A program made the translations under genes and the position numbers. A model generated the notes under the pieces. The model saw nothing but the letters and a program-made list of their open reading frames with translations, made no database searches and had not been told where the DNA came from. Source: Mytilus edulis (Eukaryota). From it: a stretch of 64,000 nucleotides of DNA. This document shows, one piece after another, positions 9,754 to 63,785 of the stretch. Every line of letters starts with the position of its first letter. Positions within the stretch are counted from its first letter, which is position 1. The stretch lies in the NCBI RefSeq assembly GCF_963676685.1, contig NC_092352.1, forward strand, positions 20,708,001 through 20,772,000. The letters run 5' to 3'.

Positions 9754-10747
9754 CTGCAAAATTAAGCATAAGAATATTTACAATAATGACATAAAAAATT
9801 CTTGTTTTACTATGTTATTAACCTTAACACCTTTTGGGATTTTTTTTTTCTCATCTACTTCATTTGAACTTTGGTTGATAGTTGTCTCATTGGCAATCAT
9901 ACCACATCTTCTTATTTTCATATCTATTCAGAAAAGTGTGCTAATGTTTTTATTATTGCAAAAATTGATTGGGACAGGTTTTTGCCAAAAAAAGTTGATT
10001 TTAATGTTTGATAGCATTATTTTATTTGTCTTCAGCATTTCTTGAAATCACATTTCTGTCCATTGAACAGCAATTGAAATAATAACTGCATGCATATTTT
10101 TTTTGTAATAAGTTCAACTGCAATCAAAGGGACTTAGTAATCATATCACTGTATAAGTTAAAGGTTATGTTTAGTATTTGTCATTGAGACAGCAACCCAG
10201 CTATGCATATACATGTACAAATGTATACATGTATAAATAAAGAATCTTCAAAAAGTGAAATGAGACTATACAATATTGTGGATTCCTAAATTAGTGAGGA
10301 CCAATTGCAAATTAAGTGGATTGGTAAGCAGGTAAGATTAAAAAATTGTCTTTTGAGTTTTTATTTTTCAAGACTTTTTTTTGTTCTCATTTAGTGGTGC
10401 ATACACATTTACTTTGCCAGTGAAGTTATTGTGGCAATAGTCAAAAACTAAACTGTCAAGTGAACTAATGATTGGCTCTCTCTTTTTATCTTTTTGATTT
10501 AGCTATATATTTTTTATAGGTCCAAGAAATCCATATGATATGCGATCTTCACATATTCAAGGACTTTCATATGTACAAATGTATACAGCCTGAGATTTCA
10601 CTTTTTTTTATTTGAGTGTTCCTGTGTACTTCAAACATACCGGTACATTGTTTATAAATTGTTAATTACATTTCTTTCTTTTCATTAAAATCTTCCATAT
10701 TACCTATAACTATATATATATTATTTAACTTTAAATTAAAAACATAC

Positions 10748-11255
10748 CTCGATTGAACTTTTGTAATTCTTCATAGCAATCATGTGTGTCATACACACAA
10801 ACAGGAATCATTAGTCCACAACGACCAATACATAACTTCTCCCTGAATTCACAGACTTGGTTCTCATGTTGGTCTTTGTCTTTTTTAAGTATCATTTTAT
10901 CACAGCGATTAAATCGACACTTTAGCTTCCTGTATCCACAACCCTCAACATGGTTAACATAAATTTCTAACATTACTGTTTCTGCACAACCATTATCTTT
11001 AAAATCACAGAACATTAGCAAACGATTTATCATGTTTTGTACTATTGGAAGGACTGGTTTGAGTTGTCTTTTCTTGACTCTCCTACGACAGGTTGGACAG
11101 TTACGATGATTGTTCAGCCACGTTGTTATACATACATTACAGAAGACATGACGACAGGGGCTCTCCACAGGAGACTGAAGGACACACTGACATATACAAC
11201 ATATTAAATCTGGGTCAGGTGGCTGACAAAACTTTTCTGTATCATACTGGGACAT
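10748..11255 (-). CDS. RING E3 ligase, first coding exon: C3HC4 RING + TRAF/SIAH-type zinc fingers (RNF151/RNF41-NRDP1/PDZRN3-like N-terminus)
   Basis: MSQYDTEKF..PDPDLICCICQCVL..PCRHVFCNVCI..CPTCR is the typical N-terminus of this family, followed by C/H-rich fingers. Donor AG|GTATGT at 10748/10747. Confidence 0.9.
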
Positions 11256-48900: not shown

Positions 48901-51900
48901 GCGATTGCAAAGTTGGTGATATTTCTTGTCTATGTGTGGCTTTAAAGACATACGTCTTTTAATTGATAGTTCAAAGTGAGTATTGCTCAAGATTGCCAAA
49001 GCTTTAGAAATATTTTCCCTCATAAGTTTTACATCTGGAGTTTTGGATTTCAAAATTTCAGCCACTCTTATCAATGGTACCATACCACAACCCAGCGATT
49101 TTTGTATAGTTTGTAGATTCAAATCTGCAGTTTTAGCTTTTCTTTCAAGAAATTGCCATATCTCAGCATTAACTGGGGGTGCTACAAGACTTTTGCAATT
49201 TACCGGTATCTTCATTTCTCTCGTCATTACTGACACATCTGATTTCTTCTTACAAATATTGTCAAAAACTTTTGCTAATGATGCGCTTACCTCTTCATCA
49301 TATTTTTCATCATCTTCAAATATTTTAGGTAATTCATAGTCAAATTCGTCATCAGATGCTATAACCTGAGGTTCATTCTCTTCGTCAGAAAAGATATTGT
49401 AGTGAGTGTCAATCACCTGCTCATCAGACTCATTCTCAGAAAATTCCATGTTATTGTCAATATTTTTACTGGACATTTCATTATTGTGACTCAAAGTGGA
49501 TACTAGAGTATCCGACAAACCTTTAAATAAAGTTTTAAGCAACTCTGACTGGTCAACCTGATTCTTTGCAGCAGTTTTCTTTACTGTGCCTGTGCCAGGT
49601 TTCGTAGCCTTCGTACCTTTACCACGTTTTTTGACCGGACTTACTGTTATTCCGCTCCCTGATGGCAACTCATTGTCCATCTCAGTCACCTGCCTTTTAG
49701 GTGTCTTTTGCTTACTGGCTAAAGCCTTGCCTTTTGTAGAGCTCGTACTCTTCTTACCTTTTTCAGTCTGTTGTTGTTTTTGTTTTTGTGTGACTGCCAT
49801 TCGGATGTCCTCGGCAATTAATATTTGTGCTTCCGGGTTATCGAACTCCGGGTCATTAATGTTCTCAACTTGAGAAAAACCAGAAAACGAAGCATCAACT
49901 TCTTCGTCTGACGCAAATAGTTTTAATATTTCATCGTCATTGTCACTTTCACTGTCGCTTAAACGCGATGTACAGCGCGACATAACTTCTGTATATAAAC
50001 AGCTGACAGATTCTGCCAAGTTTTGAAATTTATTTTCAATGTTTCCGATTCGGATAAATTATTTTACAACAGAGTCTGTTGCAAAACTTTTATTTCGTGT
50101 ACTAAATCGAGTCGACTTAACCACGTGCGGCCTTTTAAAATAAAGAGGCTGGTCACTACTCTGCACGGGCTTATATAGTAGTGGTCAGACAAAAAATCAC
50201 TCAGCTGTGAAAAAAGGCGTGCGGCCTTGACATAAAGTAAAGGTTCACTTATTAACCTGAGCAAGCCCAGGATTATGATATATAATGAGTTAAAAATTAA
50301 AAGTTGATTTCTGATCAAATATTCAATAAATATTTTTGTGCGTTTGATAAATAAAAATTTGAATATTATTATTTTTAAATTAAGGTCTTCATAAACATAG
50401 TCTATAAATTAACAACAAAAAAACATGCAAATTCATTGGAAAATACTAAAAAATGTGTCTAAAATAAACTTTTTATTATTAAATCAGATTTTATATTGAA
50501 CAGATTGAAAATATATTAATGATATATTGAATAAATACAATATTGCATACTGTATGCAATATTGTATTTATTCAATATATCATTAATATATATGTGAGTT
50601 TATAGAAGTATTTCAATAAAAAAACAGATAATTTTTTGGTCAGGTAAATTAATCAATGAGTGATATATTTCTCCTAGAAGAAATTTAAAGGTCCTGGTGA
50701 ATGAACTATACAGAGAACAATTTACCTGTTGTATTTGTTAGATGGGACAATAGAACTTACAAAAGTTTAAATCGACAGGTAACTTGCAGATGAATCTATG
50801 GAAAACTATCATAGGGTTCGCAATAATATGTTTATTTTGTTAAGGAGAAAATAAATGACAATATCTATTATAGTGCATACTTTATTTCTTAAGCTGTTGA
50901 GTATACAAATATGGTAGGAATGCAAATGTAAAAAAGAATTACGAATTATATTAAAATTGTTTTTATATGTCTTTTCAGACTTTTGAAGGACATGACAGTT
51001 CTGTTTTAAGAGTGGTCTTTTTAACTAGAGGCATGCAGTTATTATCATGGTTTGTATACATGTTTTCTTACATTACATTGTGGAACATGTGTTGCACATA
51101 TAGACATGTATAGATATAAGAAGATGTGGTATGGGTGCCAATGAGTCAACTCTCCATCCAAGTCACAATTTTTTTAAAAGTAAACCTTTATGTAGGTCAA
51201 AGTATGGTCTTAAACATAGAGCCTTGGCTCACACCGAACAGCAAGCTATAAAGGGCCCCAAAAATGACTAAATTTTTTGATTTACACTCATATATGTCTA
51301 ATATCAGTTGCTTTACTTCTGAAGATATTTATTATATAACTTAGCAAATGACAAAATATTTTAAAAGTACACTCATATATAATGTCTATATTTTAATGGT
51401 TTTTTAGTGGGTTCAGATGGATTATTAAAAATCTGGACAATAAAAACAAATGAATGTGTAAAGACATTTGATGAGCATGATGATAAAGTTTGGGGGCTTG
51501 CTGTCAGTTCTGATGAAAACCGTGTTATCACTGGTGGTGCAGACTCAACCATTCTGGAATGGCAAGTAAGTCAAGAATAGTGCAATACTAAGGACCAGAT
51601 ACAGTCATACCTCCAGTGGTGATTAGTTTTTTGTTTGTTGAACTATTATTTAGGAATATCAATGATGGGTAATCTTCTTTTCTTCTCACAAGCTTATTTT
51701 ATTGCTCAAATATCTTTTAGGTAATAAATAGACATTTTTGAAGAACCTTGTAAAACATGCTTGCCTTCTGTTTGACCTTGTTTTGCACATGGTTTGATCA
51801 TATCGAAAATTCTATTTGCCAACTATACCTTTATTTTTAAAGTGATAAACACATGGCTTCCTATTTCTTCTGCAAAGATAAATATTGTTTAATTTTTCTC

Positions 51901-54900
51901 CCATGTATTGTTTATAGTAGCTAATATAGACTGTGCAAGTATGTTTAAAATCTTGAACTATTACAGGATATAACACAGGAAGTAGAAGACACCACAAGGA
52001 AAGAACAAGAACAGTTTATTATCAGGTAATATAAATATACATGTTTTAAAAGCATCTTAAATTAGGTTTATATATTTGATACAAGATTGAACATAAAGAA
52101 AATTCTGCATGATAGATATTGTTTTACAATGAGAATTGTTAATACTGTAGAATGTAGATAACTTATTATTCATGGGGTATTAACTTTTGTGGATTTGTTG
52201 GTATAGGTGAATCATGAATTTAAATGTTCGATTAAGAAATGAAGTCTTAACTTGAAAAATTGTGTTGTCTCTTGCTTTTTTCAAGTGAATGTCAGATATG
52301 ATATTTCCCCCCTTTTTTCCAGAGAACAGGAATTGTCAAACTTGATTCAGCAGAAGAAATACCACAAAGCAATTGCATTGGCAATTAAGTTAGAACAACC
52401 CTTTAGAGTGCTGACCATTTTAAAAGGTTTGTCTAATTAGAATGTCAGAAAATAACAAATAAAATAATAGCCATGTAAGACTTTGATGAAAGCTTCAACT
52501 TCCACAGATTTTTCGACCTATGATAGTAGAGGGGCATTATGTTTTCTGGTCTGTACGTCCGTTCGTCCGTTAGTCCGGATTCAGGTTAAACATTTTGGTC
52601 AAGGTAGTTTATGATGAAGTTGAAGTCCAATCAACTTTAAACTTAGTAAACATGTTCCCCATGATATGATCTTTCTAATTTTAGTGCCAAATTAAAGTTT
52701 TGACCCCAATTTCACGGTCTACTGTACATAGAAAATGATAGTGTGAAGTTCAGGTTAAAGTTTTTGGTCAAGGTAATTTTTGATGTAGTTGAAGTGCAAT
52801 AAACTTGAAACTAAGTACACATGTTCCCTATGATATGATCTTTCTAATTTAAATTCCAAATTAAAATTTTGACCCCAATTTCACGGTCCACTGAACATGG
52901 AAAATGATACTGCGAGTGGGGCATCCGTGTACTATGGACACATTCTTGGTTTTTATACGACGCAAAATTTGAAATTTTTTTCGTCGTATATTGCTATCAC
53001 GTTGGCGTCGTCGTCTGCGTCGTCGTCGTCGTCGTCGTCGTCGTCCAAATACTTTTAGTTTTCGCACTCTAACTTTAGTAAAAGTGAATAGAAATCTATG
53101 AAATTTTAACACAAGGTTTATGACCACAAAAGGAAGGTTGGGATTGATTTTGGGAGTTTTACCCAACATTTTAGGAATTAGGGGCCAAAAAGGGCCCAAA
53201 TAAGCATTTTCTTGGTTTTCGCACTATAACTTTAGTTTAAGTTAATAGAAATCTATGAAATTTTGACATAAGGTTTATGACCACAAAAGAAAGGTTAGGA
53301 TTGATTTTGGGAGTTTTGGTTCCAACAGTTTAAGAATTAGGGGCCAAAAAAGGGCCCAAATAAGCATTATTCTTGGTTTTCGCACAATAACTTTAGTTTA
53401 AGTAAATAGAAGTCAATGAAATTTAAACACAATGTTTATGACCACAAAAGGAAGGTTGGTATTGATTTTGGGAGTTTAGGTCCCAACAGTTTAGGAATTA
53501 GGGGCCAAAAAGGGACCCAAATAAGCATTTTTCTTGGTTTTCGCACCATAACTTTAGTATAAGTAAATAGAAATCTATGAAATTTAAACACAAGGTTTAT
53601 GACCATAAAAGGAAGGTTGGTATTGATTTTGGGAGTTTTTGTCCCAACAGTTTAGGAATAAAGGGCCCAAAGGGTCCAGATTTAAACTTTGTTTGATTTT
53701 ATCAAAAATTGAATAATTGGGGTTCTTTGATATGCCGAATCTAACTGTGTATGTAGATTCTTAATTTTTGGTCCCGTTTTCAAATTGGTCTACATTAAGG
53801 TCCAAAGGGTCCAAAAATTAAACTTAGTTTGATTTTAACAAAAATTGAATCCTTGGGGTTCTTTGATATGCTGAATCTAAAAATGTACTTAGATTTTTTA
53901 TTATTGGCCCAGTTTTCAAGTTGGTCCAAATCGGGGTCCAAAATTAAAATTTGTTTGATTTCATCAAAAATTGAATAATTGGGGTTCTTTAAGCCAAATC
54001 TAACTGTGTATGTAGATTCTTAATTTTTGGTCCCGTTTTAAAATTGGTTTACATTAACGTCCAAAGGGTCCAAAATTAAACTAAGTTTGATTTTAACAAA
54101 AATTGAATTCTTGGGCCTCTTTGATATGCTGAATCTAAACATGTACTTAGATTTTTGATTATGGGCCCAGTTTTCAAGTTGGTCCAAATCAGGATCCAAA
54201 ATTATTATATTAAGTATTGTGCAATAGCAAGAAATTTTCAATTGCACAGTATTCAGCAATAGCAAGAAATCTTCAATTGCACAGTATTGTGCAATAGCAA
54301 GAAATCTTCAATTGCACAGTATTGTGCAATAGCAAATATTTTCAATTGTACAGTATTGCACAATAGCAAGAAATATCTAATTGCACAATATTGTGCAATA
54401 GCAAGAAATTCCAATTGGATTTCAATTGGAGTTATCTTTCTTTGTCCAGAATAGTAGTTGAATCAACTTAAATCATTGTTTTATACAATATACAATGTAT
54501 ATTCACTTTTACTACCAACTGATAGATTAAAACAATCTTTACCATTCAGTGATAACAAGCACTTTTTTTACATTTTAATATTTTATGATGTATTTAAATG
54601 AGTAGTTATTGTTGCAAACTTCATTAGAAATTTGAATTGAGATCAGTTTTGAAATAAGGGAAAGGGGGATGTGAAAAAAAAATTGGAGGGTCAATTTTTT
54701 TCATTTCAGATTTCATAAATAAAAAGAAAATTTCTTCAAACATTTTTTTGAGAGGATTAATATTCAACAGCATAGTGAATTGCTCAAAGGCAAACATTTT
54801 TTTTTAAGTTCATTAGACCACGTTCATTCTGTGTCAGAAACCTATGCTGTGTCAACTATTTAATCACAATCCAAATTTAGAGCTGAATCCAGCTTGAATG

Positions 54901-57900
54901 TTGAGTCCATACTTGCCCCAACTGTTCAGGGTTCAACCTCTGCGGTCGTATAAAGCTGCGCCCTGCGGAGCATCTGGTTTTTATCTACAATGAGTTTATC
55001 TTCAGTGTGCATAAAACATTCAGACGGCTTTAGGTATTATCTAATTGTGTAGCATTATGAATTTTTTAAAAGAAAAGAAAAAAAGAGTCTACATAATTTG
55101 GGCTGAAAGCAATAATTATATATAACACTGAAATTTCAAATGGGATCATTTTAACTTCAGAAGAAATGATGCTGGATAAAGATTTGTAATCAATGTGCTT
55201 TGGGTGAACATTGATAAAGAGATCAAAATAATTGAACATTCAAAAAGTCAGATAATAAAATCAACGGTACCAATTTTGTTGCACCAGATGCGCATTTCGA
55301 CAATATATGTCTCTTCAGTGATGCTCGTGGCCAAAATATTTGAAATCCAAAGCTTATATAAAAGATGAAGAGCTATAATCCAAAATGACTTCAAATAATT
55401 GTAAAATTAAATGAGGCTTAGTTATAAGACGATATTTGATTAAAATTTTTATAAACCAATAGTTATGCTAAGAGTTAACATGAGAAGCGCATGCGCAGAT
55501 AGAGGTCACTATTCAGAGATATTCATGTATAATTGAATAAATTTCTGGGTAGGTAATGATGAAAAAAGGGTGGGCATGTTAACTCTTAGCATAACTATTG
55601 GTTTATAAAAATTTTAATCAAATATCGTCTTATAACTAAGCCTCATTTAATTTTACAATTTTTATAAACCAATATTATGCAAGAGTTCCCATGAGATTTG
55701 AGAGCCAATTTACTTGAATACGTGTAATTTATCCCTGTTGTGTAGGATTACAATAATGTATTGGATTCCCAAATTACTATAAATTAATATAGCAATCAGC
55801 TCACAATTAGTTATATATATCTATAACTGTTTCAACGACATACGGAATACCAATATATCTGTAGGCAACAAAGCCATTTCATAATATGGATTTTGGTAAT
55901 GATAAAGACATTTTCAAATAATATTGTATTAACTTATATACATCATGAACATTGGTACATTATAAGCAAAAACAAAACTATTTTCCACGAAGTACTCGTA
56001 CACTATAGTTATCATTGACCTCTTGAACAGTAACTGGTCTATTGTAAAATTGCCTAAAAGTAGACTCATTTGTCCATCCTGCTGATTTTAAAATAGAATT
56101 TACTGACACCCCAGCTCTAAGTGCTGCTGATGTACTAGCTCCCCTAGTACTGTGTGTTTTAAAAACAGAAGTATTTACACCTGCAAGCTTTAAAACCAAT
56201 TTAAACCAATTACTAATTGTTGACTTTGTTGGGTGATGGTATGGTTTTACAAATGTAACAAAAAGTTTTTGAGATGTACGTATTGCAGATGTTCTTTCGA
56301 TATAGGCGTTTAAAACTGTTACAATACACAGTCTTGTGTCATCAACAAATGCTGGCAAACATATTGGTGATAAATGTTTTCCTGGTTTTGAGGTTTTCAA
56401 AACCTCATTAATTTCAATTACAACATTGTCTTTTGTAATTTTCATAAAATCTAAATCTACACAATGTAACGTCTGTATTCTCTGTCCAGTAACTAGTGCT
56501 AATAACATGACTAATTTCAAAGTTAAACATCTCAGTGACAAAAGCTTTACAGGCGATAAAGTAATCAAAAATTCTAATACAACATTAACATCCCATGTTT
56601 GCTGATATCTAGGGAACATTGGTCGTTTATTATAAACTCCTCTGAGGAACCTTTTAACTAAAGGCCACTGACCAATCGGCAGTGTTTTTCCCAATGTCAA
56701 ATATGACGATAATGCAGATCGTGCTGTGTTAATAGAACTATATCCTACACCGGACTCGTATAAAACTGTCAAAAATTCCACTACATCCACCTCAGTTCGC
56801 GTAAAAATATCAATCTTTCGTTGACAACAAAATGTACACCATTTTTTGAGATATGTCCAATACTGTTTTTGTGTACTTTGTCTCCAGGATGAGATGACAA
56901 TTTCTGCAGCCTTTTTTGATAGTCCTGTATTTTGAACAATTTGCCCGACAATCTGAAGACACCCAAAATCAGTTTTTTCAACGGATGTTTCTTTTGAGGA
57001 TCTGTTGGCAGTATCAACAACTGTTGTCCTTTTTCCCTGGGTATTATGTAAGAATCCTGAACAATATGATGCAGTATTTGAGGGAACCAATGTTGAGTGC
57101 TCCACAAAGGTGCTATTAAGGTTATTTCTGCTTCCTCCAAAATCAGTTTTTGGATAACTTTTCCTACCATGCTAAAAGGAGGAAAAACAAATGAGTTAAA
57201 GTTAGTCCATCTTATAGAAAAAGCATCTACTGCTTCAGCATTAGGATCAGGTAAGTATGAAATATACCTCGATAACTGATGATTTATCCTTGAAGCAAAT
57301 AAATCAATATCATGCGGACCATATATTGAATTAATACACATAAAAACATTAGTGTTAAGTTTCCATTCTAGATCTGTATTATTAGAACGTGACAATTTGT
57401 CGGCTTCAACATTTGTTTTTCCCGGTAAATGACAAGCACTTAACCAAATGTTTCTGTGTATACACCATTGCCATATTTCCATTGTTAAGGTATTAAGAGA
57501 TTGAATTCTACCTCCCATTTTGTCTATATAGGTCACAGCTACCATATTATCCATGTATATTCGAACATGTTTATCAGATTTTGTTGAACAAAAACATTTA
57601 AATGCTAAAAACGCTGCTTTCAGTTCTAAATAATTTATGTGTAATTTCTGCTCTTCATAAGACCAAAAACCCTTGGTTTGAAGTTGTGTATTGTCGACAA
57701 CACCACCCCAACCAGTTTTTGAACTGTCTGTTTTTAAAATGATCTCAGGATCTTTTCGTACTAATGGTTTAAAACTAGACTCAACATGAGAAATCCACCA
57801 ATTTAACACATCTACTGATTCATTTGAAATGATGATTTTAGTGTCAAAATCGCCATTGTTTTGTTTTAAAAACTTGTCTTTTTCTATTTCTAAAGATTTT

Positions 57901-60900
57901 ATATATATAAGTGCATGTTCAACTCCTGGTTCGGCAGCAATCAATTTGCCTATAATCTGTGCAAATTGCCTGATTGACATTTGTCTGTTTTTAACATATT
58001 TACAGCATGTAAGTTTTATTGCTTGTGCTTTTTCAGTTGTAAGTTTAATTGTCATTGTTATTGAATTCACAACAAATCCTAAAAATGTAATTGTTTGTGT
58101 CGGTTCAAATACAGATTTGACAGGATGAATAGTAAAGCCTAATTTATCCAATAAGGTGACTGTATCAGAAATATTAATTGCACATTGCGAATAACTATCA
58201 CTGATCAAAAGACTATCATCAATGTAAGCTACATTTTTGTGTCCAATTTTTCTTAAATGTGAAAATGGCACTTTCAAAACTTTTGTAAATATCCTTGGCG
58301 CAGTTGTCAGCCCATTAGGCAAACATGTATATTCATACAACTGTTCATTCCAATAGAACCGTAAATATTTTCGGTCTTTGTGGTCAATAGAAATAGAATA
58401 ATATGCGTCTTTCAAATCAATAGAAGCAAACCAGCAGTTTTGTGACACACATTGTATTGCTGACTTTAATGTTTCCATTTTAAAATGGTGTTTTTCAATA
58501 TCATTGTTGAGAACTTTTAAATTTAAAATTACTCTACATGTACCATCCTTCTTTGGTCTTGTAAAAATATTTGAAACATATTGATTTTTAATATACGTCA
58601 CTGGTTTTATAATTTGTTTCTGTAAAAATTTATCTATTTCTAACTGTACCATATTTGTTTCATCTTTATCAAATTGTAATAAATTTGGTTCTTTGTTTTG
58701 ATATGGAATTTGCTCAAACTCAATTTGATACCCTTTTACAACATCTAAAACCCAGTTATCTGAAGTAAGACTCATCCAATTATCTAGGAATGTTTTCACT
58801 TTCCCACCAATGAAATTGTCTGGTGTGTTTGAAAATGTAAATTGTGTATTCAATTGCTGAACTGAAGTACTCACAGGCAAACTAATTTGCTTTGGCAATT
58901 CTAAAACTTCTTGTCCTGCTCTTGGAACTTCTTTTTGAACTTTTTCTTTTTGTAAGTGGGTTTCCCTAAAAAATCTTTCTTGTTTGATGGTTTGTCAAAA
59001 TGACGTTTTGGTACATGTACATATGGCTTCTTAAAAGTTTTCTTGTCATCATGTGATTTCTTTCCAACATTAAAATTGGTTTTGCCCAGTTTCTTCCCTA
59101 CTGTATATTCAGCATCCATTTCTTTGACTTTATCTTTGATGTCATTTCCAAAGAGAAAATCAGTTACTGGAACATCATCTTTGCATAAAGCTTTATATTT
59201 TGGTTGTATTTCTGCTTGTATTAAAGCTCTTCGTCTAAAAGTAATGTCTGCATACGTGACTTGAGTCATTTGGTACGCGTCCTTACAGAGTTGTGTAGCA
59301 GAGTGTACCTCTTCTGTCGTGAGTCCATCATTGGTTTGAGATTTACCAAGAAACATGTCCATTAAATACAGCATAGGACACGCTGCTTTGCCCAATAGGT
59401 TTTGATTTTTTTGTAGTTTGACGTCGTTCATTCTATTAGATATTGACATCTGTGACCAGATACCTGAAAAGGAAATGAATTCCTGTATTTTATGTCGGCC
59501 TCAATCAAATAATTTATATTGATTTGAATTAAATTTTAAAAAATACATTTACATGTACATGTATATAAATATATATTTATTTTCAAAGAATTGAATTTTA
59601 ATTAATTTTAAAATTTAACATGTACATTTTTGTACATGTATCATATGTTTAATAGTATATTTACTTTATATACACTCACCCAAATTAATTTTTGGGACTG
59701 TCAAACTGTGTACATTTTCTGGCTTTGCATACTTTTTGGTTAGCTCATCAACTTTGTTTTGCTTGGCCTTTTTTCTCAAGCCATCATTGACAACAGATGC
59801 CAGTTCATCATTTATCTTTGGACCAGCTTTCTCTTCAGTTACCATGAAGCCCTTCATATCTTCAATGACAGACATAGTGTCATTGTTTTTATTAGAAGTA
59901 CTATTACTGTTAATGTTAGTATGTATTTCTTGTTGATCAAGTTCATTGTCAGAATTATTTGAGCTTTCTGATTCACTTTCACTTGAGACATCAGATAAAG
60001 GGCTTGCTTCCCTTTGATTTTGTTTGTTGTTTTGTGATTGGCAAAGTTCTTGAAGTTCTTTCATGTAACTTTGTGTCAAAGACTCAGATTGTACTCGTGA
60101 TCCATGTCCGTGGCCACTTTCAGTTTCATATCTTTGTTTTTTAGAACTTGATGGGCTTGCGTCATCACTGGCAGATACAGTACATGTTGTACCTCGTTTG
60201 CCACATTTGTTTTTCTTAACTGGCGTGTTAGAATCAGTTCTTTCATTGTTCAACAATGCTTGTGTTATCATTTGAGTTTGTAGCAGTAACTGATACAGAT
60301 CCGGTTGTTTGTCAACATCCGGTGTTTGGTTGATTGACACATGTGACAATGGAGCTCCGCCCCCTACGCACAAATTGTCTACATTTTCAAGTCTAGCTTC
60401 AAACACAAGTTCATTATTAGAAGCGTTATCAATATTGCAGTGTTGTTGATTAACTTCATGAAAATGAAGAAATCTACTGTCATTCGAAGAATGTCTTTCC
60501 ATTTTGGAATGTTCTTCCTTTTCATCCGCCATTACGGTCGGATATTTGGACAGTCACACTGTGGTCACAAGAACGACCTCGACCGCAGTCGTCAGTCTTA
60601 TAATGTTCAAGGACCTATAACAGCAAACGTTGCTGATATCACTGTTCATCCATTGAACATAATAATAAATCCAATTACTAAGAATAGAATCAAAACTTTC
60701 AATAATAAGTTTCTAAAATTTTCCACGTGTTAACCTCTTAAAATCTGCTAACGCAGTAACCTCTATCTGCGCATGCGCTTCTCATGGGAACTCTTAATGA
60801 CAAATCAGTTAAAACTTAAATGCTATATCACTATGCATACCGAGTAAAGTCAGTCTCAAATTAATAAAATGTTATTTGTATTTTAAAATACTTCTATGGA

Positions 60901-63785
60901 TCGAATCAACGAGGACAAATGTATTTTCAATAATAAATTTAAAAAAAATATCTTACACCAATTTATTGAAGAATTGAAATTATTCACCAACGTCCATTTT
61001 TGATTGATAGAAGGACAAAATAATCTTTAAAATACTTTTTCCCCTTGCTTCAAAGTTACAGCACTACATTTAAACAATTTTAACAATTACATATACTGTG
61101 ATGGTGGCAATAGAATGAGAATCAATCTATCATTTCCCAAGAGGTCAAACATATGAACGATTTCAAATCATAAGTACCATGTACATGATATATTTAATGT
61201 TTCAGAAATATTAGCTAGCCAGTCTGGAGTAGAAGACTTACAAGCAACTTTACAAAAATTAAGACAGGACCAGTTGGGTAAGCATTTGTTATCATATCTT
61301 TTGAGATTATTTTAGGTTTAAAATGTCCAGTTGGACCTTAATATCCAGGCCCATTCAGTTACTGTTTGTTTGTTTATAAATTTTTTGGTACTTTTCAGTA
61401 GTTAATGAAGTTTGGGTAAAATATATATGGCATTTCTTGAAACGATATATTTCTTTCATTGTCTATATAAAACTTGCCTTGAAGCTGAAATAAAGATACA
61501 GATACCAGTATTGTGTGTATTATTGATTTAAAAAAAAAAAAAAAAGTAACACAATTTTTTTTTTAAATCAAGATAAGTATATAAAACTTTTTTTGTTTTC
61601 AGATGCTGTTTTGAGATTTTGTGGTCAGTGGAATACAAACAGTAAAAACTGTCATGAAGCACAGTTTATATTGTCTGTAGTGTTGAAATCTTACACAGCA
61701 GAAGATCTTCTGAAGTTTCCTAATATGAAATCAACAATAGAATCCTTATTACCTTACACCGGTAAGTAAATGACAGGTGCTCTAGTAATTGTAATGTAAG
61801 CTTATAATGGGATGGCAAATTGCTATACTGTTTTTGAATACAAATTTTATGATTATTTTAGTTTAATGAATCAGACAAAAGTTTTATGTTCACCAATTTA
61901 ACATATTAAAAGTTCCAAAATTGTCTAAATCTTTATAAGTATTTAAAAGCAATAAAACACCTGCAGAAGCTAAATGATATTTCACTAGTAAAGGCTGTTC
62001 TATAAAGGCATACATAAAACTAGGGAATAGCAACTTAAATTTACCACAATGGATGGGTATAAAATATGTTGTATGGGTTTGAATGTACGCAGCACTCTGA
62101 AATGGCTTCTATGGGTTGTCACTCTTTTTTTTCAAAATGCTTTCCCTGGGTGCAATGTGCATTTTAATGAAACGGCCCCAAGTCTGACATACATAAGTAT
62201 ATGAATGTAAAACAGATGAGCACCCTATACCAAGCTCAACATATATGGAATTGTTATGTGTTGAATTTATTTTCAGAGAGACATTTCAACAGATTGACAA
62301 GACTACAACAACAAGCCATGTTTGTGGAGTATACATGGCAGTGTATGAAAGGAATAACTGATATAAACAGGTATTCATACACAATTATATTTATATACTA
62401 CAACAACAAGCCATGTTTGTGGAGTATACATGGCAGTGTATGAAAGGAATAACTGATATAAACAGGTATTCATACACAATTATATTTATAAAGCATTTTA
62501 TCCTTTATATGCTAGAGGGTTTTTTTAAATACAGAAGACACACACATAAATTATTATGTGTGTGAATGAAAAGAAAATTTTTTATTATCTGACATAAAGG
62601 TATTGTTTCTTTTAATATGCTTTGTTTAATATTTTGTAAACACAGTGTTTAAAATCAAAATTCTAGCCAAAAAGCATGTAGAATACCCTGGTTCTGATAA
62701 GATATTAATATGAACAGTTTCCGCTTGCTGCTCTTTGGTTGGGTTGTTGTCTCTTTGACACATTCCCTAATTCCATTCTCAATTTTATCTTTTTGTATGA
62801 CAAAATAATAACATCAAAACATTATGATTGCAGTATAACTAAGCTATTTTTCACTGTGTGGTTTTCAAGACCTGCAAGATAAATCAGTACTTGATCACAT
62901 TTTTATCTTTGTCTTTTTTTAAAGCAGTGAAACTGAAGACAGAGTCGGACAATTTGTTATTGACAAAAATCCAAATAATGTTGATGACGATGAAAATATG
63001 GAAATGTCTGATGAAGATGAAGACAAAATGAAACACAGTAATATGGTAAGTAACTAGATAGTAATGGGAACCATCACAGCAGCCCTGCAGCATGTAAACA
63101 AGTAATGGATGATGCCAATAGGGTTATTACTTAGAAACGATATTTATACAAACACACAGGGATGTTTTAGTTGAGTTATGTTTTTGACCATATCTTTCAA
63201 TGTAGGGTTTCCTTCTGGGTACATGACACACCAATTAAGTAGTGGCAAACTCCAGGTAGTTTAAAGTAAGGCAGCAAAAAGGATTTTAGGAATATTCACA
63301 CCAAGTTTCAACGCTGAACTCATACCATATTTATTGTTTTAATGAGGATTTTAAAATTAGAGTTTTGAAATTATTTGTGACTGACAGATGCATGGAAGAG
63401 CAAGTGATACTATAGGCCTTCCATTTCTGTATCTGTACGGGACTAACAAAATCAAAATGCTCACAGCATTCATACATGTTACAGATTACTTGTTATCTGT
63501 CAATAAAGAATTAGGGCTTTCCTAAAAATCATTAACAAGTATTGATTGTACTGAAAGAAAAGACAATTAGTTGTATAATTTCCTGTAAACTTTATTTACA
63601 CATTTGTTGAAAAAAAATAAATTGTTTTAACTTTAATTAAAAAAAAAAGTTCTAAATTTCTATTTTGACAGGTTAGTAAAATGGAGGAAAGCAGTAAACT
63701 GTCTTTAAAAAGAAGAAAAATAAGGAAGAAAATAGACAGTCGTAAAAGAGTAAAACAAGCTGTCAACAAAAAGAAGAGGAAATAA
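15898..63785 (+). CDS. TBL3: Transducin beta-like protein 3 (UTP13; WD40 repeats + Utp13 C-terminal domain), gene span, 24 coding exons, ~864 aa once the 1-nt excess in exon 17 is removed
   Basis: The spliced exons give FYTGGKIQ, HGHTDIVL, AHDKDINSIAVSPND, GHRKGIWCVQFSPVDQ, TFEGHDSSVL, WNTNSKNCHEAQ and LLPYTERHFNRL, all TBL3 hallmarks. All introns are GT-AG with compatible phases except 16/17. Confidence 0.95.
16735..19247 (+). mobile_element. Dispersed (SINE-like) repeat interrupted by a HINE
   Basis: Sequence at 16735-16921 resumes at 19030. Its 3' end GTTGTTGTCxCTTTGACACATTCCCxATTCCATTCTCAAT recurs at ~62730-62790. Confidence 0.55.
16922..19029 (+). mobile_element. Helentron-type HINE, copy 1
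   Basis: SubTIRs TATACGACCGCA / TGCGGTCGTATA, (CGT)n microsatellite, ~158-bp internal tandem repeats, 3' GC hairpin, T-rich insertion site, no TSD. Closely related copy at 52950-54980. Confidence 0.88.
19275..20637. mobile_element. TIR DNA element (CAGGGCTCAC..) with 6-bp TSD
   Basis: TIR CAGGGCTCACGCTAC / GTAGTGTGAGCCCTG (14/15). AGTGTT is duplicated at 19269-19274 and 20638-20643. Confidence 0.8.
22605..22962. repeat. ~88-100-bp tandem repeat, 4 copies, inside MULE-1
   Basis: ATTCTAAATAAAGTATTTTCGCGGACTATGACAG..GTGCAGGATATCTTAGTAG repeated. Confidence 0.9.
24530..24759 (+). mobile_element. Short dispersed repeat (ends GAGTTGTCTCATTGGCACTCA.ACCACATCTTC) inserted in the LINE
   Basis: Splits the LINE sequence GAACAGGCAT^ATAAATCC. 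Other copies at ~3755-3845, ~9870-9927, ~13920-13990 (-) and ~51108-51270 (-). Confidence 0.75.
26257..26308 (+). CDS. TBL3: TBL3 exon 2
   Basis: FAVSQKHEAFYTGGKIQ, flanked by AG/GT. Confidence 0.9.
27117..27212 (+). CDS. TBL3: TBL3 exon 3
   Basis: RSQNGELLFCGCGNKVNVLDVTTGKVTETLEQ. Confidence 0.9.
27174..28048 (+). repeat. 62-bp minisatellite, ~14 copies, made of the TBL3 exon 3 3' end plus its donor site
   Basis: Unit GATGTTACAACTGGGAAAGTMACAGAAACATTAGAGCAG|GTTGGTACAATATATAGTTCTTG. Confidence 0.95.
29437..29484 (+). CDS. TBL3: TBL3 exon 4
   Basis: EEDEEITCYCITPDDK. Confidence 0.88.
30440..30705 (-). mobile_element. Dispersed retro-element-like repeat fragment
   Basis: Shares the CCTGCTCCACATGTGGCA..GTGTTGCT block with fragments at ~15955-16015 (opposite strand) and ~37420-37485. 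Confidence 0.5.
31047..31124 (+). CDS. TBL3: TBL3 exon 5
   Basis: YLIVATRHLVLRQWLWKEKSITRTWK. Confidence 0.9.
31826..31974 (+). CDS. TBL3: TBL3 exon 6
   Basis: AIHNSAVTAMTFDKTSTLLATGSSDSSIKLWD..RGHQGVV. Confidence 0.92.
33073..33243 (+). CDS. TBL3: TBL3 exon 7
   Basis: VVEFHP..LFSSANDNKVRVWD..AHFSVVTSL. Confidence 0.92.
33580..33655 (+). CDS. TBL3: TBL3 exon 8
   Basis: GGRDNILAVWDVEKLQVIKTIPILE. Confidence 0.92.
33880..33976 (+). CDS. TBL3: TBL3 exon 9
   Basis: NVESVVLLPE..VITFGSK. Confidence 0.9.
33992..34200. mobile_element. MITE with G/C-run termini and 6-bp TSD, 15 nt downstream of the exon 9 donor
   Basis: TAAACT at 33986-33991 and 34201-34206; internal (ATCCCGA)-type repeats. Confidence 0.7.
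34683..34885 (+). CDS. TBL3: TBL3 exon 10
   Basis: GSMKIWNV..VVADHTISMYNIENIEIQKQ. Confidence 0.9.
35815..36015 (+). CDS. TBL3: TBL3 exon 11
   Basis: FCGYTDEILDLQFIG..QILHGHTDIVL..ATASK. Confidence 0.93.
36700..36835. repeat. Fold-back element end: perfect 40-bp inverted arms with an inner secondary stem
   Basis: 36700-36739 is the reverse complement of 36796-36835; inner CCCATATCAGC / GCTGATATGGG. Confidence 0.85.
37153..37259 (+). CDS. TBL3: TBL3 exon 12
   Basis: DNSIRMWNLD..GQGHTSSVGSIIFS. Confidence 0.92.
37842..38028 (+). CDS. TBL3: TBL3 exon 13
   Basis: FVVSGGEDCTIKMWD..AHDKDINSIAVSPNDKYIVTASQDKTAK. Confidence 0.93.
38445..38534 (+). CDS. TBL3: TBL3 exon 14
   Basis: LW..GVLRGHRKGIWCVQFSPVDQ. 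Confidence 0.93.
38615..43013 (+). mobile_element. Helentron-type HINE carrying ~8.5 tandem copies of a ~502-bp unit
   Basis: 5' TTTTTAGCTCACCTG + hairpin, (CGTC/CGT)n microsatellite, units at 38720, 39224, 39727, 40228, 40730, 41231, 41730, 42231 and 42728, 3' subTIR AGGTGAGC and hairpin AGGCTCT-AGAGCCT. Confidence 0.9.
43169..43696. mobile_element. Non-autonomous Kolobok-like DNA transposon
   Basis: TTAA TSD on both sides; 12-bp TIR AGTCATATGAAA / TTTCATATGACT with purine-purine termini. Confidence 0.75.
43853..43921 (+). CDS. TBL3: TBL3 exon 15
   Basis: CAVTSSADGTIKIWSLSDFTCVK. Confidence 0.93.
45783..46910 (-). CDS. DIRS-A tyrosine recombinase
   Basis: Catalytic set R (AQRSQ), K (KTTRP), HSYR, W (ANW), Y (FY). 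Overlaps the 3' end of pol. Confidence 0.93.
   Translation of the reverse strand: MDNSVMVSKVIESINRFSCKIASVVKLANSSTQQSKSYNEHKKNVSYRLSCFRKHLLNQGFSDKTTKIFLKSWRKSTNVQYEYSWRSWVLWCNSRQTSPTSPSVKLLLDYLSILFQKGRSYSCINSHKSAICQTLTLLGNLSFENNSYIQRFLKGVFNLRPPRPRYLFTWDVGKVLSYLESLYPLQDLDLKMLTLKCVALIALASAQRSQTLASLNLNSVLSTGTSFIFRVTTLLKTTRPKNIGQDVIIPVFQKKEICPVETLKHYIHRTKDLRKSSKLFISFRTLKAVTSCSIARWLKLVLSNAGINVLKFKAHSYRSASSSAAKRAGISLNDILKTANWASAQTFKKFYCKDIEVDNTNSNYVHSVFNHTFTA
46598..48754 (-). CDS. DIRS-A Pol (RT, RNase H, phage-like DNA adenine methyltransferase domain); probably entered by -1 frameshift
   Basis: LDLTDAY, LPFG, YIDD; TDAS..GWGA, HINILELKA, DNLSR; DLFAS..DAF..YIFPPF. The listed start (48646) is GTG and the frame is open back past 48754. 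Confidence 0.92.
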   Translation of the reverse strand, partial: FFRQKGLSAKTKLSEPTGSIERKQTQHLQSEKKILKVRNKSINIKRKSGKLKNFISNWKYLTKDNWIISTIKGYKIEFDEKPIQEKIPVPIKFNNKEKALIDKEIVDMLEKGAIKESFDESEQFISNIFLVKKKNGKFRPVINLKPLNQFISYHHFKQETLDLILKGISKNSFFTSLDLTDAYFSISIYESDRKYLKFIWNEKLYEFQCLPFGIASAPRVFTKILKVIFSHIRSMGIDSYFYIDDSLLQAENFDLAVQNTEKVKTFIESVGFDINIEKSVFIPTNRIIFLGYIIDSVLFKVFLPEEKVRKIIELSNKMLKAHKVSIRSLAQLTGLYSSAHYAVQYAHLFHRYLDLDKTQALHASNNNFNSFLNISVEGKSEIVWWLENVKTVNGRPIRNDSPSYYLHTDASLNGWGAVFHGKQTQGHWSLEEQCLHINILELKAIYFSIISLCCHVERTHICVKSDSSTAVNYINNQGGSVLSLLEITKQIWHWCIKNKVLLSAVHIPGKENIIPDNLSRNFNDTSEWKLNESVFNEVTKHFFIPDTDLFASRLNNQLNNFVSWFPDPDAYATDAFSFSWHKLYPYIFPPFSQISRVLQKIEDDQVSRAILIVPVWTTQLWYPKLLKALIDFPVKLPQLSNLLTLAHNNQSHTMNTRKMFLIACLVSGNISLIKVFQTKLQKSFLNLGESQPMFSMNTLGEAGFCGVIQDKLVPLLHL
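48649..49983 (-). CDS. DIRS-A Gag-like ORF1
   Basis: First ATG at 49983. P-VN-EIW..D..LQ..Q, LS-KRR..LKP and LFG motifs typical of DIRS ORF1; RG-rich tail. Confidence 0.85.
   Translation of the reverse strand: MSRCTSRLSDSESDNDDEILKLFASDEEVDASFSGFSQVENINDPEFDNPEAQILIAEDIRMAVTQKQKQQQTEKGKKSTSSTKGKALASKQKTPKRQVTEMDNELPSGSGITVSPVKKRGKGTKATKPGTGTVKKTAAKNQVDQSELLKTLFKGLSDTLVSTLSHNNEMSSKNIDNNMEFSENESDEQVIDTHYNIFSDEENEPQVIASDDEFDYELPKIFEDDEKYDEEVSASLAKVFDNICKKKSDVSVMTREMKIPVNCKSLVAPPVNAEIWQFLERKAKTADLNLQTIQKSLGCGMVPLIRVAEILKSKTPDVKLMRENISKALAILSNTHFELSIKRRMSLKPHIDKKYHQLCNRNEDVGSNLFGDEVGKRLKDINEINKINKNITSSYGRNSNYRGSFRGRSRFLGRRGYQPRQSYQSPRGQLRGNRPNTFNQKRRF
50511..50591. repeat. Perfect AT-rich palindrome, 40-bp arms with a 1-nt spacer
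   Basis: ATATATTAATGATATATTGAATAAATACAATATTGCATAC-T-reverse complement. Confidence 0.95.
50979..51049 (+). CDS. TBL3: TBL3 exon 16
   Basis: TFEGHDSSVLRVVFLTRGMQLLS, phase-2 donor. Confidence 0.92.
51408..51565 (+). CDS. TBL3: TBL3 exon 17 (one extra G near 51409-51411)
   Basis: GSDGLLKIWTIKTNECVKTFDEHDDKVWGL..WQ. 158 nt where 157 is needed. Confidence 0.88.
51967..52025 (+). CDS. TBL3: TBL3 exon 18
   Basis: DITQEVEDTTRKEQEQFII. Confidence 0.88.
52323..52426 (+). CDS. TBL3: TBL3 exon 19
   Basis: EQELSNLIQQKKYHKAIALAIKLEQPFRVLTILK (start of Utp13 domain). Confidence 0.92.
52508..52949 (+). mobile_element. Short HINE-like element
   Basis: GGGGCAT motif near both ends, (GTCC/GTTC)n microsatellite, two ~170-bp internal repeats, 3' hairpin GTGT..ACAC. 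Confidence 0.7.
52950..54980 (+). mobile_element. Helentron-type HINE, copy 2 (same family as 16922-19029)
   Basis: Same termini, (CGT)n microsatellite and internal repeats. Confidence 0.88.
55978..57105 (-). CDS. DIRS-B tyrosine recombinase
   Basis: GQRIQTL, KTSKPG, HSTR, AGW and FYNR catalytic motifs. Confidence 0.93.
   Translation of the reverse strand: MEHSTLVPSNTASYCSGFLHNTQGKRTTVVDTANRSSKETSVEKTDFGCLQIVGQIVQNTGLSKKAAEIVISSWRQSTQKQYWTYLKKWCTFCCQRKIDIFTRTEVDVVEFLTVLYESGVGYSSINTARSALSSYLTLGKTLPIGQWPLVKRFLRGVYNKRPMFPRYQQTWDVNVVLEFLITLSPVKLLSLRCLTLKLVMLLALVTGQRIQTLHCVDLDFMKITKDNVVIEINEVLKTSKPGKHLSPICLPAFVDDTRLCIVTVLNAYIERTSAIRTSQKLFVTFVKPYHHPTKSTISNWFKLVLKLAGVNTSVFKTHSTRGASTSAALRAGVSVNSILKSAGWTNESTFRQFYNRPVTVQEVNDNYSVRVLRGK
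56781..58973 (-). CDS. DIRS-B Pol (RT, RNase H, methyltransferase-like domain); probably entered by -1 frameshift
   Basis: IDLKDAY, LPNG, YIDD; TDSS..GWGG, HINYLELKA, ADKLSR; DLFAS..DAF..FPPF. The listed start (58898) is TTG and the frame is open back past 58973. Confidence 0.92.
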   Translation of the reverse strand, partial: FFRETHLQKEKVQKEVPRAGQEVLELPKQISLPVSTSVQQLNTQFTFSNTPDNFIGGKVKTFLDNWMSLTSDNWVLDVVKGYQIEFEQIPYQNKEPNLLQFDKDETNMVQLEIDKFLQKQIIKPVTYIKNQYVSNIFTRPKKDGTCRVILNLKVLNNDIEKHHFKMETLKSAIQCVSQNCWFASIDLKDAYYSISIDHKDRKYLRFYWNEQLYEYTCLPNGLTTAPRIFTKVLKVPFSHLRKIGHKNVAYIDDSLLISDSYSQCAINISDTVTLLDKLGFTIHPVKSVFEPTQTITFLGFVVNSITMTIKLTTEKAQAIKLTCCKYVKNRQMSIRQFAQIIGKLIAAEPGVEHALIYIKSLEIEKDKFLKQNNGDFDTKIIISNESVDVLNWWISHVESSFKPLVRKDPEIILKTDSSKTGWGGVVDNTQLQTKGFWSYEEQKLHINYLELKAAFLAFKCFCSTKSDKHVRIYMDNMVAVTYIDKMGGRIQSLNTLTMEIWQWCIHRNIWLSACHLPGKTNVEADKLSRSNNTDLEWKLNTNVFMCINSIYGPHDIDLFASRINHQLSRYISYLPDPNAEAVDAFSIRWTNFNSFVFPPFSMVGKVIQKLILEEAEITLIAPLWSTQHWFPQILHHIVQDSYIIPREKGQQLLILPTDPQKKHPLKKLILGVFRLSGKLFKIQDYQKRLQKLSSHPGDKVHKNSIGHISKNGVHFVVNERLIFLRELRWM
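58901..59463 (-). CDS. DIRS-B Gag-like ORF1, exon 2
   Basis: Acceptor TTTCCTTTTCAG|GT ATC TGG; IWSQM..DVKLQKNQ..RRRALI..LFG. Confidence 0.85.
59680..60532 (-). CDS. DIRS-B Gag-like ORF1, exon 1
   Basis: ATG at 60532. Ends ..KYAKPENVHSLTVPKINL G|GTGAGT. Spliced product is 471 aa. Confidence 0.85.
61206..61277 (+). CDS. TBL3: TBL3 exon 20
   Basis: EILASQSGVEDLQATLQKLRQDQL. Confidence 0.9.
61603..61761 (+). CDS. TBL3: TBL3 exon 21
   Basis: AVLRFCGQWNTNSKNCHEAQ..ESLLPYT. Confidence 0.93.
62277..62370 (+). CDS. TBL3: TBL3 exon 22
   Basis: ERHFNRLTRLQQQAMFVEYTWQCMK. Confidence 0.92.
62302..62490 (+). repeat. 95-bp tandem duplication of the TBL3 exon 22 3' part plus its donor site
   Basis: ACTACAACAACAAGCCATG..ATAAACAG|GTATTCATACACAATTATATTTATA occurs at 62302 and 62397. 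Confidence 0.92.
62925..63045 (+). CDS. TBL3: TBL3 exon 23 (acidic tail; NAGNAG acceptor at 62925 or 62928)
   Basis: Polypyrimidine tract + AAG CAG, open frame SETEDRVGQF..DEDEDKMKHSNM, donor GTAAGT. Confidence 0.75.
63672..63785 (+). CDS. TBL3: TBL3 exon 24 (basic tail, stop)
   Basis: TTTTGACAG|GTT; VSKMEESSKLSLKRRKIRKK..KKKRK* in phase 0. Confidence 0.75.
   Translation, partial: VSKMEESSKLSLKRRKIRKKIDSRKRVKQAVNKKKRK

Follow-up and report, generated by a model that had tools for sequence, protein, structure and literature searches.

Introduction

Retroelements copy an RNA, and a sense-strand intron should therefore disappear as soon as a spliced RNA is copied. A few systems depart from this expectation. 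Ogre Ty3/gypsy LTR retrotransposons of legumes carry an intron between coding regions, and its splicing was shown by Steinbauerova et al. 2008 (as cited in PMC3735527 and PMC12786077). Part of the Ogre coding capacity is available only from spliced RNA, while the unspliced RNA carries the intron to new copies. Because Ogre "splices between ORFs", gag is, by our reading, left readable without splicing. In copia, BARE1, EVADE and retroviruses, alternative splicing yields subgenomic mRNAs (PMC3735527, PMC5580714, PMC10309623). There the unspliced RNA encodes Gag(-Pol) and is also the genome, splicing adds a Gag-only or Env mRNA, and spliced RNA must be kept out of reverse transcription. Penelope-like elements are the textbook intron-retaining retroelements, with introns that survive retrotransposition and are conserved among related elements in invertebrates (Arkhipova et al. 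2003, as cited in PMC8557442). These elements have a telomerase-like RT with a GIY-YIG endonuclease, the studied intron lies in the 5′ UTR over an internal promoter, and retention is ascribed to their unusual priming.

Canonical DIRS1-like elements (Piednoel et al. 2011, PMC3266345; Dictyostelium DIRS-1, PMC7192593) have the ORF order gag / RT-RH-MT / YR, inverted terminal repeats and an internal complementary region, and their replication is poorly understood. Three DIRS overviews (PMC3266345, PMC3783388, PMC9210276) do not contain the words intron or splicing. Literature searches for introns in DIRS/Ngaro elements returned no description, although the older Goodwin and Poulter papers fell outside these searches and may mention putative introns. 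In these searches no support was found for the remark, made in a prior sequence-only reading of the locus, that introns are occasionally known in tyrosine-recombinase retroelements.

Here, we describe a DIRS1-like element of the blue mussel Mytilus edulis in which a 216-nt GT..AG stretch interrupts gag. The analyzed window is a 64,000-nt stretch of contig NC_092352.1 (positions 20,708,001 to 20,772,000, forward strand; assembly GCF_963676685.1), and all coordinates below refer to it. In contrast to Ogre, this is a tyrosine-recombinase element of an animal, and the predicted intron cuts through the folded core of Gag itself rather than lying between ORFs. In contrast to copia and retroviruses, the roles of the two RNAs would be reversed, as splicing should be required for both Gag and Gag-Pol.

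Results

Anatomy of the element and its interrupted gag

The element (DIRS-B, or family 1) spans 55396–60796 on the minus strand, about 5.4 kb, the size of canonical DIRS1-like elements. It is structurally complete and recently copied, a discrete unit shared at 99.1–99.5% with copies on two further contigs (C14 and C3), and the flanks differ beyond its ends. The 5′ end could be compared only for the C14 copy, as the C3 locus stops inside the element. A 42-nt 5′ terminal inverted-repeat segment (60755–60796) is 93% complementary to 55469–55510. The 3′ repeat complex (55394–55700) contains 89-nt inverted arms (55394–55482 and 55575–55663), the copy of the terminal repeat at 55469–55510, and an ICR-like complement of the 5′ tip at about 55681–55695. 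Family 3, described below, has an analogous layout.

The domain content places the element among DIRS1-like tyrosine-recombinase retrotransposons. The pol frame (56781–58994) contains RT (RVT_1, E 1e-23) and a Dam-like methyltransferase region scoring 26.3 bits, below the cut-off of 28.1. The tyrosine recombinase ORF (55978–57105) overlaps pol and matches Phage_integrase (E 3.4e-9) plus SAM-like N-terminal domains. No DDE integrase hit was obtained. The same holds for family 3, where the Dam-like region scores 26.9 bits. The ORF order corresponds to that of canonical elements, with the RH part taken by analogy and the MT part putative, resting on the Dam-like scores below the cut-off. As the domains found are RVT_1, a Dam-like region and a tyrosine recombinase, the resemblance to Penelope-like elements is functional only (intron retention); this element differs from them in its ITR/ICR termini and coding-phase intron.

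The sequence-only reading proposed that two apparently separate ORFs, 59666–60532 and 58901–59449, are joined in frame by a 216-nt AT-rich intron, and this observation is correct to the base. All features lie on the minus strand. Exon 1 (60532–59680) comprises the ATG, 284 codons and the first base of a Gly codon. The intron (59679–59464) is in phase 1, starts with GTGAGT (59679–59674) after TTG G, and ends TTTCCTTTTCAG, with its pyrimidine tract and CAG at 59475–59464, followed by GT ATC TGG. Its GC content is 0.19, as compared to 0.35 for exon 2 of this element and 0.33–0.38 for both exons in the sister families. Unspliced reading stops at an in-frame TAA (59668–59666), four codons into the intron, which gives the 288-aa ORF 59666–60532. 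Exon 2 (58901–59463) supplies the last two bases of the Gly codon, 186 codons and a TAG stop (58903–58901), and reads IWSQMSISNRMNDVKLQK... from 59461. The peptide predicted across the junction is INLGIWSQMSISNR.

The joined reading (..VPKINL-G-IWSQM..) is exactly that of the RefSeq M. edulis protein XP_071132369.1 (P0012 in our set of public proteins), which equals exon 1 + G + exon 2 of this window with 0 mismatches; exon 1 is identical to its residues 1–284. Gene models in four Mytilus species use the same junction. Such models alone prove little, as they also make plainly spurious fusions in these elements (P0004 joins gag to YR; P0010 is 820 aa). Among public ORFs for family 1, only the unspliced forms come from raw assemblies (P0017 and P0025, on a 5522-nt contig), and all spliced forms are genome-annotation models.

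Conservation of intron position and phase

In an effort to determine whether the joining of the ORFs exceeds chance, we counted alternative splices. A total of 441 bare GT..AG pairs in this stretch would also give one open frame, so ORF joining alone is uninformative and was not used as evidence. The weight comes from conservation of position and phase in diverged families and from the gap-free rebuilding of an almost invariant motif.

The prior reading had named a one-off insertion and a failure of Gag homologs to align across the junction as outcomes that would refute it, and neither was found. Three 5.4-kb copies of family 1 on three chromosomes (contigs C9, C14 and C3; 99.1–99.5%) all carry the intron, and a 90% fragment on C1 and a ~70% copy on C12 also carry homologous intron sequence. 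A one-off insertion or MITE is rejected by these copies and by the shared codon and phase in families 2 and 3 (below). None of about 14 junction-spanning M. edulis loci lacks the intron, although copy numbers are low and the genome search scores only the best candidates. All four frames are open in the 99% copies.

Two other DIRS families in this genome (35–55% protein identity, synonymous sites saturated) have an unrelated AT-rich intron of 229–322 nt at the same Gly codon and phase. Family 1 reads ..KINL G|GTGAGT..TTTTCAG|GT IWSQM, family 2 reads ..RVNL G|GTGAGA..ATTGTAG|GC IWRQM, and family 3 reads ..RVNI G|GTGAGG..ATTGTAG|GT IWKQM. Family 3 is a discrete 5349-bp unit on C12 and C5 at 99.89%, with RT, a Dam-like region and YR. 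Intron lengths are 216, 320–322, 229 and 252 nt. Between families the introns are about 50% identical with many gaps, while exon 2 aligns with no gaps. The flanking exons have pS of 0.75–0.92 against pN of 0.08–0.29, showing purifying selection, and this pattern is lost, and stops appear, in the other two frames. In a phylogeny, the intron-bearing families form a clade (support 96/98) with an intronless element as sister. DIRS-A and most DIRS families of this genome have an uninterrupted gag.

The extended splice sites are consensus-like in families 1 to 3. Scored without a host-trained splice-site model, yTnAy motifs lie 16–45 nt upstream of the acceptor in all families, and the pyrimidine fraction of the last 20 nt is 0.70 in family 1 but only 0.45–0.55 in families 2 and 3, a weak tract. 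A search for conserved RNA structure in the introns that could serve as a template-selection or packaging signal found no consistent signal (z −2.7, −1.8 and −0.1).

A fourth, sister family from another organism contains forms with the intron precisely absent. ORFs identical over 132 residues up to ..PRINVG continue either ELDIV-stop, into the intron, or IWKQMSS.., reading exactly across the predicted junction into exon 2. Some of the latter lie on contigs of 100 and 605 kb. The joined junction is seen in P0198, P0200 and P0204 and the intron in P0202 and P0134, and the intron-lacking forms are frame-broken after ..QNLLG. Scans of metagenome contigs with P0038 and P0194 found nothing.

The rebuilt Gag and its predicted fold

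To test the effect of intron removal on the protein, exons were searched individually, with the public proteins P0001 and P0012 standing in for the joined product. The joined product aligns without a gap across the junction to the uninterrupted gag of DIRS-A in the same window (48649–50019, minus strand; E 3e-17) and to seven other intronless loci. Removal of the intron restores the most conserved motif of this Gag family (P.N..L.VP.VN..IW). In 71 family members, P271, N273, N283 and W287 are (near-)invariant on either side of residue 285.

A total of 2819 library proteins were related at E ≤ 1e-3, with the core at about residues 170–465. AlphaFold gives pLDDT above 90 for roughly residues 240–415, which spans the junction. 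The best fold match is the LAP2alpha dimerization domain (2v0x; Z 8.9, rmsd 3.3 Å, 152 residues aligned, model residues 236–397), 2.6 Z above the next hit, and this domain is published as derived from DIRS1-like GAG (PMC4495291). The link rests on fold only. Pfam returned no family for the spliced protein or for either exon even at E 10, a profile of the 71 Gag relatives gave no meaningful hit against PDB sequences, and Foldseek alone was borderline (E 1.7e-3). The LAP2alpha-like domain is confidently predicted, and neither ORF encodes it alone.

Pol lies in the −1 frame downstream of the predicted intron

The pol frame is −1 relative to gag exon 2, is open from 58994, and has its first ATG 73 codons in. 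A slippery heptamer, T_TTT_TTA (U_UUU_UUA in the RNA; 58973–58967), sits in the gag frame (codons GAT TTT TTA) within the overlap and is a candidate −1 frameshift site. The same heptamer sits in the gag/pol overlap of family 3. The FLG motif is conserved in the family consensus. For DIRS-A the frame relation holds, and the heptamer is inferred from its RFLG residues. Across family 1, family 3 and DIRS-A, pol is in the −1 frame and no ATG occurs in it for 73–120 codons.

Discussion

The 216 nt are best explained as a genuine U2-type spliceosomal intron inside ORF1/gag of an active-looking DIRS1-like element, an explanation we hold with good confidence. In this view, the intron arose once, or was already present, in the ancestor of a clade of at least three M. 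edulis families plus one family in another organism, and has been transmitted through many rounds of copying since. The element would be transcribed as one RNA, of which a fraction is spliced. Only this mRNA would have the 471-codon gag whose predicted LAP2alpha-like core spans the junction, and only it would let ribosomes reach the U_UUU_UUA site, where a −1 shift would give Gag-Pol. The unspliced RNA would terminate four codons into the intron and yield only the disordered N-terminal part plus about 50 residues of the core. Because every M. edulis copy seen here keeps the intron, the RNA that is reverse-transcribed would be the unspliced one, and the proteins would have to act in trans on an RNA that did not encode them. 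Our analyses establish the anatomy of the element, the inheritance of the intron, the conservation of its position and phase, selection on both exons, and the frame relations. That splicing happens in M. edulis, that Pol is made by frameshifting, and that template choice favors unspliced RNA are inferences from sequence.

The interpretation offered by the sequence-only reading is thus supported in part. Its proposals of an inherited intron in an intact DIRS element, of Gag homology across the junction, and of a Pol dependent on a frameshift downstream of the intron agree with the data, as does the corollary that full Gag and Gag-Pol should require spliced RNA while only unspliced RNA can transmit the intron. 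Its suggestion of separate mRNA and genomic-RNA pools under a splicing-controlled (e.g., germline) switch remains hypothetical. The intron-lacking forms of the sister family indicate that spliced RNA may sometimes be copied, which softens the idea of two strictly separate pools.

Other explanations were considered and appear unlikely. The element could work as a four-ORF unit on unspliced RNA, with the 288-aa ORF1 as one product and the C-terminal Gag core plus Pol translated from the Met at 59449 by internal initiation, reinitiation or a transcript starting inside the AT-rich stretch. The corresponding ATG lies 15 nt after the acceptor, a Met at this position (five codons in) is shared by families 1–3 and found in 16 of 71 relatives, and it could allow some internal initiation on unspliced RNA. 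The raw-assembly ORFs of family 1 are all unspliced, and in Penelope an intron overlaps an internal promoter (PMC8557442). However, the residues between the acceptor and that Met (G-I-W-x-Q) and those right up to the donor (VP.(I/V)N(L/I)G) are conserved and match intronless relatives without a gap. GT, AG and the phase are kept while intron length changes by non-multiples of 3, the predicted domain needs about 50 residues from exon 1, the introns hold 5–7 ATGs that would trap scanning or reinitiating ribosomes, and a sister family shows the exact junction joined.

It is also unlikely, though possible, that the intron is real but its persistence says nothing about template choice, the copies having spread at the DNA level through recombinase-mediated excision and reinsertion or through duplication of the locus. 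The element encodes a tyrosine recombinase, as DNA-only Cryptons do, and the same satellite lies near all three family-1 copies. Yet both ends coincide for the window and C14 copies, as does the 3′ end for C3, the spacing to the satellite differs (95 nt to about 2 kb), and the copies lie on different chromosomes. Family 3 shows the same pattern without shared flanks, RT is intact and conserved in both families, and copy number has increased, which excision and reinsertion alone does not give. The precise intron loss in the sister family is the signature of an RNA intermediate. Least likely is an inert insertion or decayed gag, with chance GT..AG ends, artefactual spliced models, and an element that is a dead relic or is mobilized by other DIRS families. 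The 441 alternative pairs and the spurious predicted splices are compatible with this view, but it is contradicted by the shared codon and phase in three families with saturated synonymous sites, unrelated intron sequences and exons under purifying selection, and by the open frames of the 99% copies.

A more speculative possibility, which we regard as doubtful on present evidence, is that splicing is the device by which this retrotransposon separates its mRNA from its genomic RNA. The intron, or the unspliced state itself (for example, nuclear retention or lack of an exon-junction complex), would mark the RNA as a template, and spliced RNA would be translated but normally excluded from reverse transcription. 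This would explain why no self-sufficient intronless lineage has replaced the intron-bearing ones over a span in which synonymous sites saturated, and the intron-lacking, frame-broken forms of the sister family would be rare dead-end escapes.

An intron inside the predicted folded core of Gag and upstream of the gag-pol frameshift site, kept by several families, goes further than the Ogre arrangement. It offers a natural system, in an animal with good genome assemblies, for asking how a retroelement divides its transcripts between translation and replication. For annotation, these loci are currently filed in RefSeq as ordinary two-exon "uncharacterized protein" genes.

An interrupted gag in a DIRS1-like element of Mytilus edulis

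Two DIRS-like elements lie on the minus strand of this stretch (contig C9, 20708001-20772000, of a 1.37-Gb assembly). One, DIRS-A, has an uninterrupted 456-aa gag at 48649-50019. The other, DIRS-B (family 1 hereafter), occupies 55396-60796 and carries the interrupted gag. The sequence-only reading had proposed a 216-nt spliceosomal intron joining two ORFs of this gag, and all of its coordinates and sequences hold. Exon 1 spans 60532-59680 (284 codons plus one G), the intron spans 59679-59464 (216 nt) with the donor GTGAGT and the acceptor TTTCCTTTTCAG, and exon 2 spans 59463-58901. The GC content of the intron is 0.19, as compared to 0.35 for exon 2 of this element and 0.33-0.38 for both exons in the sister families. 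Unspliced reading stops at the TAA at 59668-59666. The two exons were handled separately, with public proteins standing in for the joined product. The joined reading is exactly that of the RefSeq M. edulis protein P0012 (XP_071132369.1), which equals exon 1, Gly, and exon 2 of this locus with no mismatch.

A GT..AG pair that merges the two ORFs is not rare, as 441 such pairs exist in this stretch, and the joining of the ORFs was therefore not used as an argument. The comparative pattern described below, in contrast, cannot be chance.

DIRS-B is a discrete 5.4-kb unit shared at 99.1-99.5% with copies on contigs C14 and C3, whose flanks differ. It encodes a reverse transcriptase (RVT_1, E 1e-23), a Dam-like region just below the cut-off, and a tyrosine recombinase (YR; E 3.4e-9). 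The termini form inverted repeats (60755-60796 against 55469-55510), and the 3′ end contains 89-nt inverted arms and an internal complement of the 5′ tip. This is the DIRS1-like layout described by Piednoel et al. (PMC3266345). A satellite with units of about 161, 136, and 258 bp, plus a 35-bp array (53058-54417 and 16973-18813 in this stretch; 3599-4348 and 994-3025 in the extracted loci L008 and L009, respectively), lies 3′ of DIRS-B. The same satellite is found 95 nt to about 2 kb from the C14 and C3 copies and also occurs alone elsewhere in this stretch, which may reflect either an insertion preference of the element for this repeat or a shared neighbourhood.

Conservation of the intron within and between families

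In an effort to determine whether the intron is inherited, we searched the genome with a 617-nt probe spanning it. The intron is found in all three young copies. The probe also recovered the 5′ half of the intron in a 90% fragment on C1, and homologous intron sequence in a ~70% decayed copy on C12, where the donor has mutated to CT and the acceptor is kept.

A genome search with the public spliced Gag (protein P0001) gave 88 matches. Relatives at 45-58% identity in exon 2 are all split at residues 282-287, whereas relatives at 36% identity or less are continuous. Reading the DNA of the split loci defined two further families. Family 2 (C9:2.43 Mb, C3:22.5 Mb, and C1:10.6 Mb) has ..RVNL G|GTGAGA...ATTGTAG|GC IWRQM with an intron of 320-322 nt, and family 3 (C12:6.88 Mb, C5:4.50 Mb, and C11:58.96 Mb) has ..RVNI G|GTGAGG...ATTGTAG|GT IWKQM with an intron of 229 or 252 nt. 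The position, the phase (phase 1), and the Gly codon are thus the same, while the intron sequences are unrelated and AT-rich (about 50% identity with many gaps) and two of the lengths are not multiples of three. A Met five codons after the acceptor (IW.QM; 59449-59451 in family 1, and the exon 2 starts of loci L019 and L021) is shared by all intron-bearing families, whereas most relatives have Leu there (M in 16 of 71, L in 40 of 71); this Met may or may not serve as an internal start on unspliced RNA.

Family 3 is itself a discrete 5349-bp unit present on two chromosomes at 99.89%, with RT, a Dam-like region, YR, and terminal inverted repeats. Probes across the family 2 and family 3 introns again found only intron-bearing loci. 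In all, about 14 loci span a junction and none is intronless, although copy numbers are low and, because the genome search scores only the best candidates, this is a lower bound on what exists. Five matches to the 3′ part of the family 3 intron and its acceptor/exon 2 border, spaced about 1.1-1.5 kb apart, were found at C10:61300866-61306470 and look like a tandem array built from a piece of a DIRS element.

Between families, the exon flanks have saturated synonymous sites (pS 0.75-0.92) and pN values of 0.08-0.29. When read in either wrong frame, the contrast disappears and stops appear. A tree of the exon 2 part groups the intron-bearing families (support 96/98), with an intronless element on C14 as sister. 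The simplest history is a single gain on that branch, though an older intron with later losses is not excluded.

The protein predicted to be rebuilt by splicing

Intronless relatives, including DIRS-A, align across the junction with no gap (..RPEN(C/V)..L.VP.VN..(I/L)W..). A phmmer search of 1.84 billion representatives found 2819 relatives, and in an alignment of 71 of these P271, N273, N283, and W287 are invariant or nearly so. The intron therefore cuts the signature motif of the family at residue 285. AlphaFold predicts a disordered N-terminal half and a confident helical core (pLDDT above 90) from about residue 240 to 415. The best structural match of this predicted core (model m28a8fbccce60, residues 236-397 of P0001) is the LAP2alpha dimerisation domain (Z 8.9, rmsd 3.3 A, 152 residues), with the next hit at Z 6.3, which fits the published origin of that mammalian domain from DIRS1-like GAG. 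For helical folds such a Z is only moderate, and there is no sequence-level hit, with no Pfam model detecting these mussel Gags. We therefore take the match as support for the identity of this protein as DIRS ORF1 and not as proof. Either way, about 50 residues of the predicted core come from exon 1 and about 130 from exon 2.

A fourth family (45-50% identical) was found among the phmmer hits. It comes from JGI/IMG and ENA assemblies and is absent from M. edulis. At the protein level, its ORFs come in two forms that are identical over 132 residues up to ..LTVPRINVG. One form continues ELDIV-stop, that is, into a GTGAG.. intron (proteins P0202, P0134, P0177, and P0180), and the other continues IWKQMSSEHKMRDVKLQRIQNLLG.., the exact predicted exon 2 (P0198, P0194, P0182, P0200 on a 100-kb contig, and P0204 on a 605-kb contig). 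A further ORF, P0094, enters exon 2 from inside the intron. Whether the joined forms are retrocopies of spliced RNA or assembled transcripts, they require splicing at exactly this junction. The joined forms all leave the Gag frame 23 codons later, right after ..QNLLG, with two different tails that look like the other two frames of exon 2, and they are therefore not intact gag genes. This pattern points to length changes at one spot, possibly an A run.

Gag-Pol frames and a proposed mechanism

In family 1, family 3, and DIRS-A, the pol frame is -1 relative to gag exon 2 (gag, for DIRS-A). It overlaps gag by 91, 55, and 142 nt, respectively, and has no ATG for 73-120 codons. The slippery heptamer T_TTT_TTA lies in the overlap (58967-58973 in family 1; near 2061 in locus L021; inferred from RFLG in the C-terminal part of the DIRS-A gag) and encodes a conserved F-L-(G/D) in families that share only about 23-50% Gag identity. 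FLG also appears in the consensus of the 71 Gag relatives. With cap-dependent scanning, ribosomes on unspliced RNA would stop at 59666 and then meet seven ATGs in the intron. Gag and Gag-Pol should therefore come from spliced mRNA.

Combined, these data lead us to propose that one transcript is made and divided by partial splicing. Spliced RNA would be translated into Gag and, by frameshifting, Gag-Pol, while unspliced RNA would be the template that carries the intron into new copies. In this view the proteins act in trans. The introns show no shared structure. While the structure of the element, the inheritance of the intron, its shared position and phase, and the frame relations were read from the sequences, splicing in M. 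edulis, frameshifting, and the use of unspliced RNA as template are inferred from sequence alone. The proposed observation is confirmed, and we regard the 216 nt as a real, long-conserved spliceosomal intron in the gag of DIRS1-like elements. The interpretation attached to it in the sequence-only reading is only partly supported: the dependence of Gag and Gag-Pol on spliced RNA and the transmission of the intron by unspliced RNA agree with the comparative data, but the suggested germline switch is pure conjecture.

Relation to other intron-bearing retroelements and to existing gene models

Ogre elements keep an intron between ORFs that is spliced in part of the transcripts, copia, BARE1, EVADE, and retroviruses use splicing to make subgenomic mRNAs, and Penelope-like elements retain introns (PMC3735527, PMC12786077, PMC8557442). 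The present case differs in the class of element and in that the intron should disable Gag itself on the unspliced RNA. Three DIRS surveys never mention introns or splicing, although an earlier mention in the older DIRS papers cannot be excluded.

The splice is already implicit in RefSeq and other gene models in four Mytilus species, where the products are filed as uncharacterised proteins. Such models also produce obvious artefacts in these elements: across the public proteins P0004, P0010, and P0173, gene predictors fuse the gag N-terminus to the recombinase C-terminus or build chimeras of 820-1000 aa, and TE loci are entering protein databases as host genes.

Elsewhere in this stretch, a 95-bp unit is perfectly duplicated in tandem at 62302-62490 (two copies, 100% identical). 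An ORF with RING and Sina-type zinc fingers lies next to a short reverse-transcriptase fragment on the minus strand (10731-11255 and 12917-13396) and is unrelated to the gag intron.
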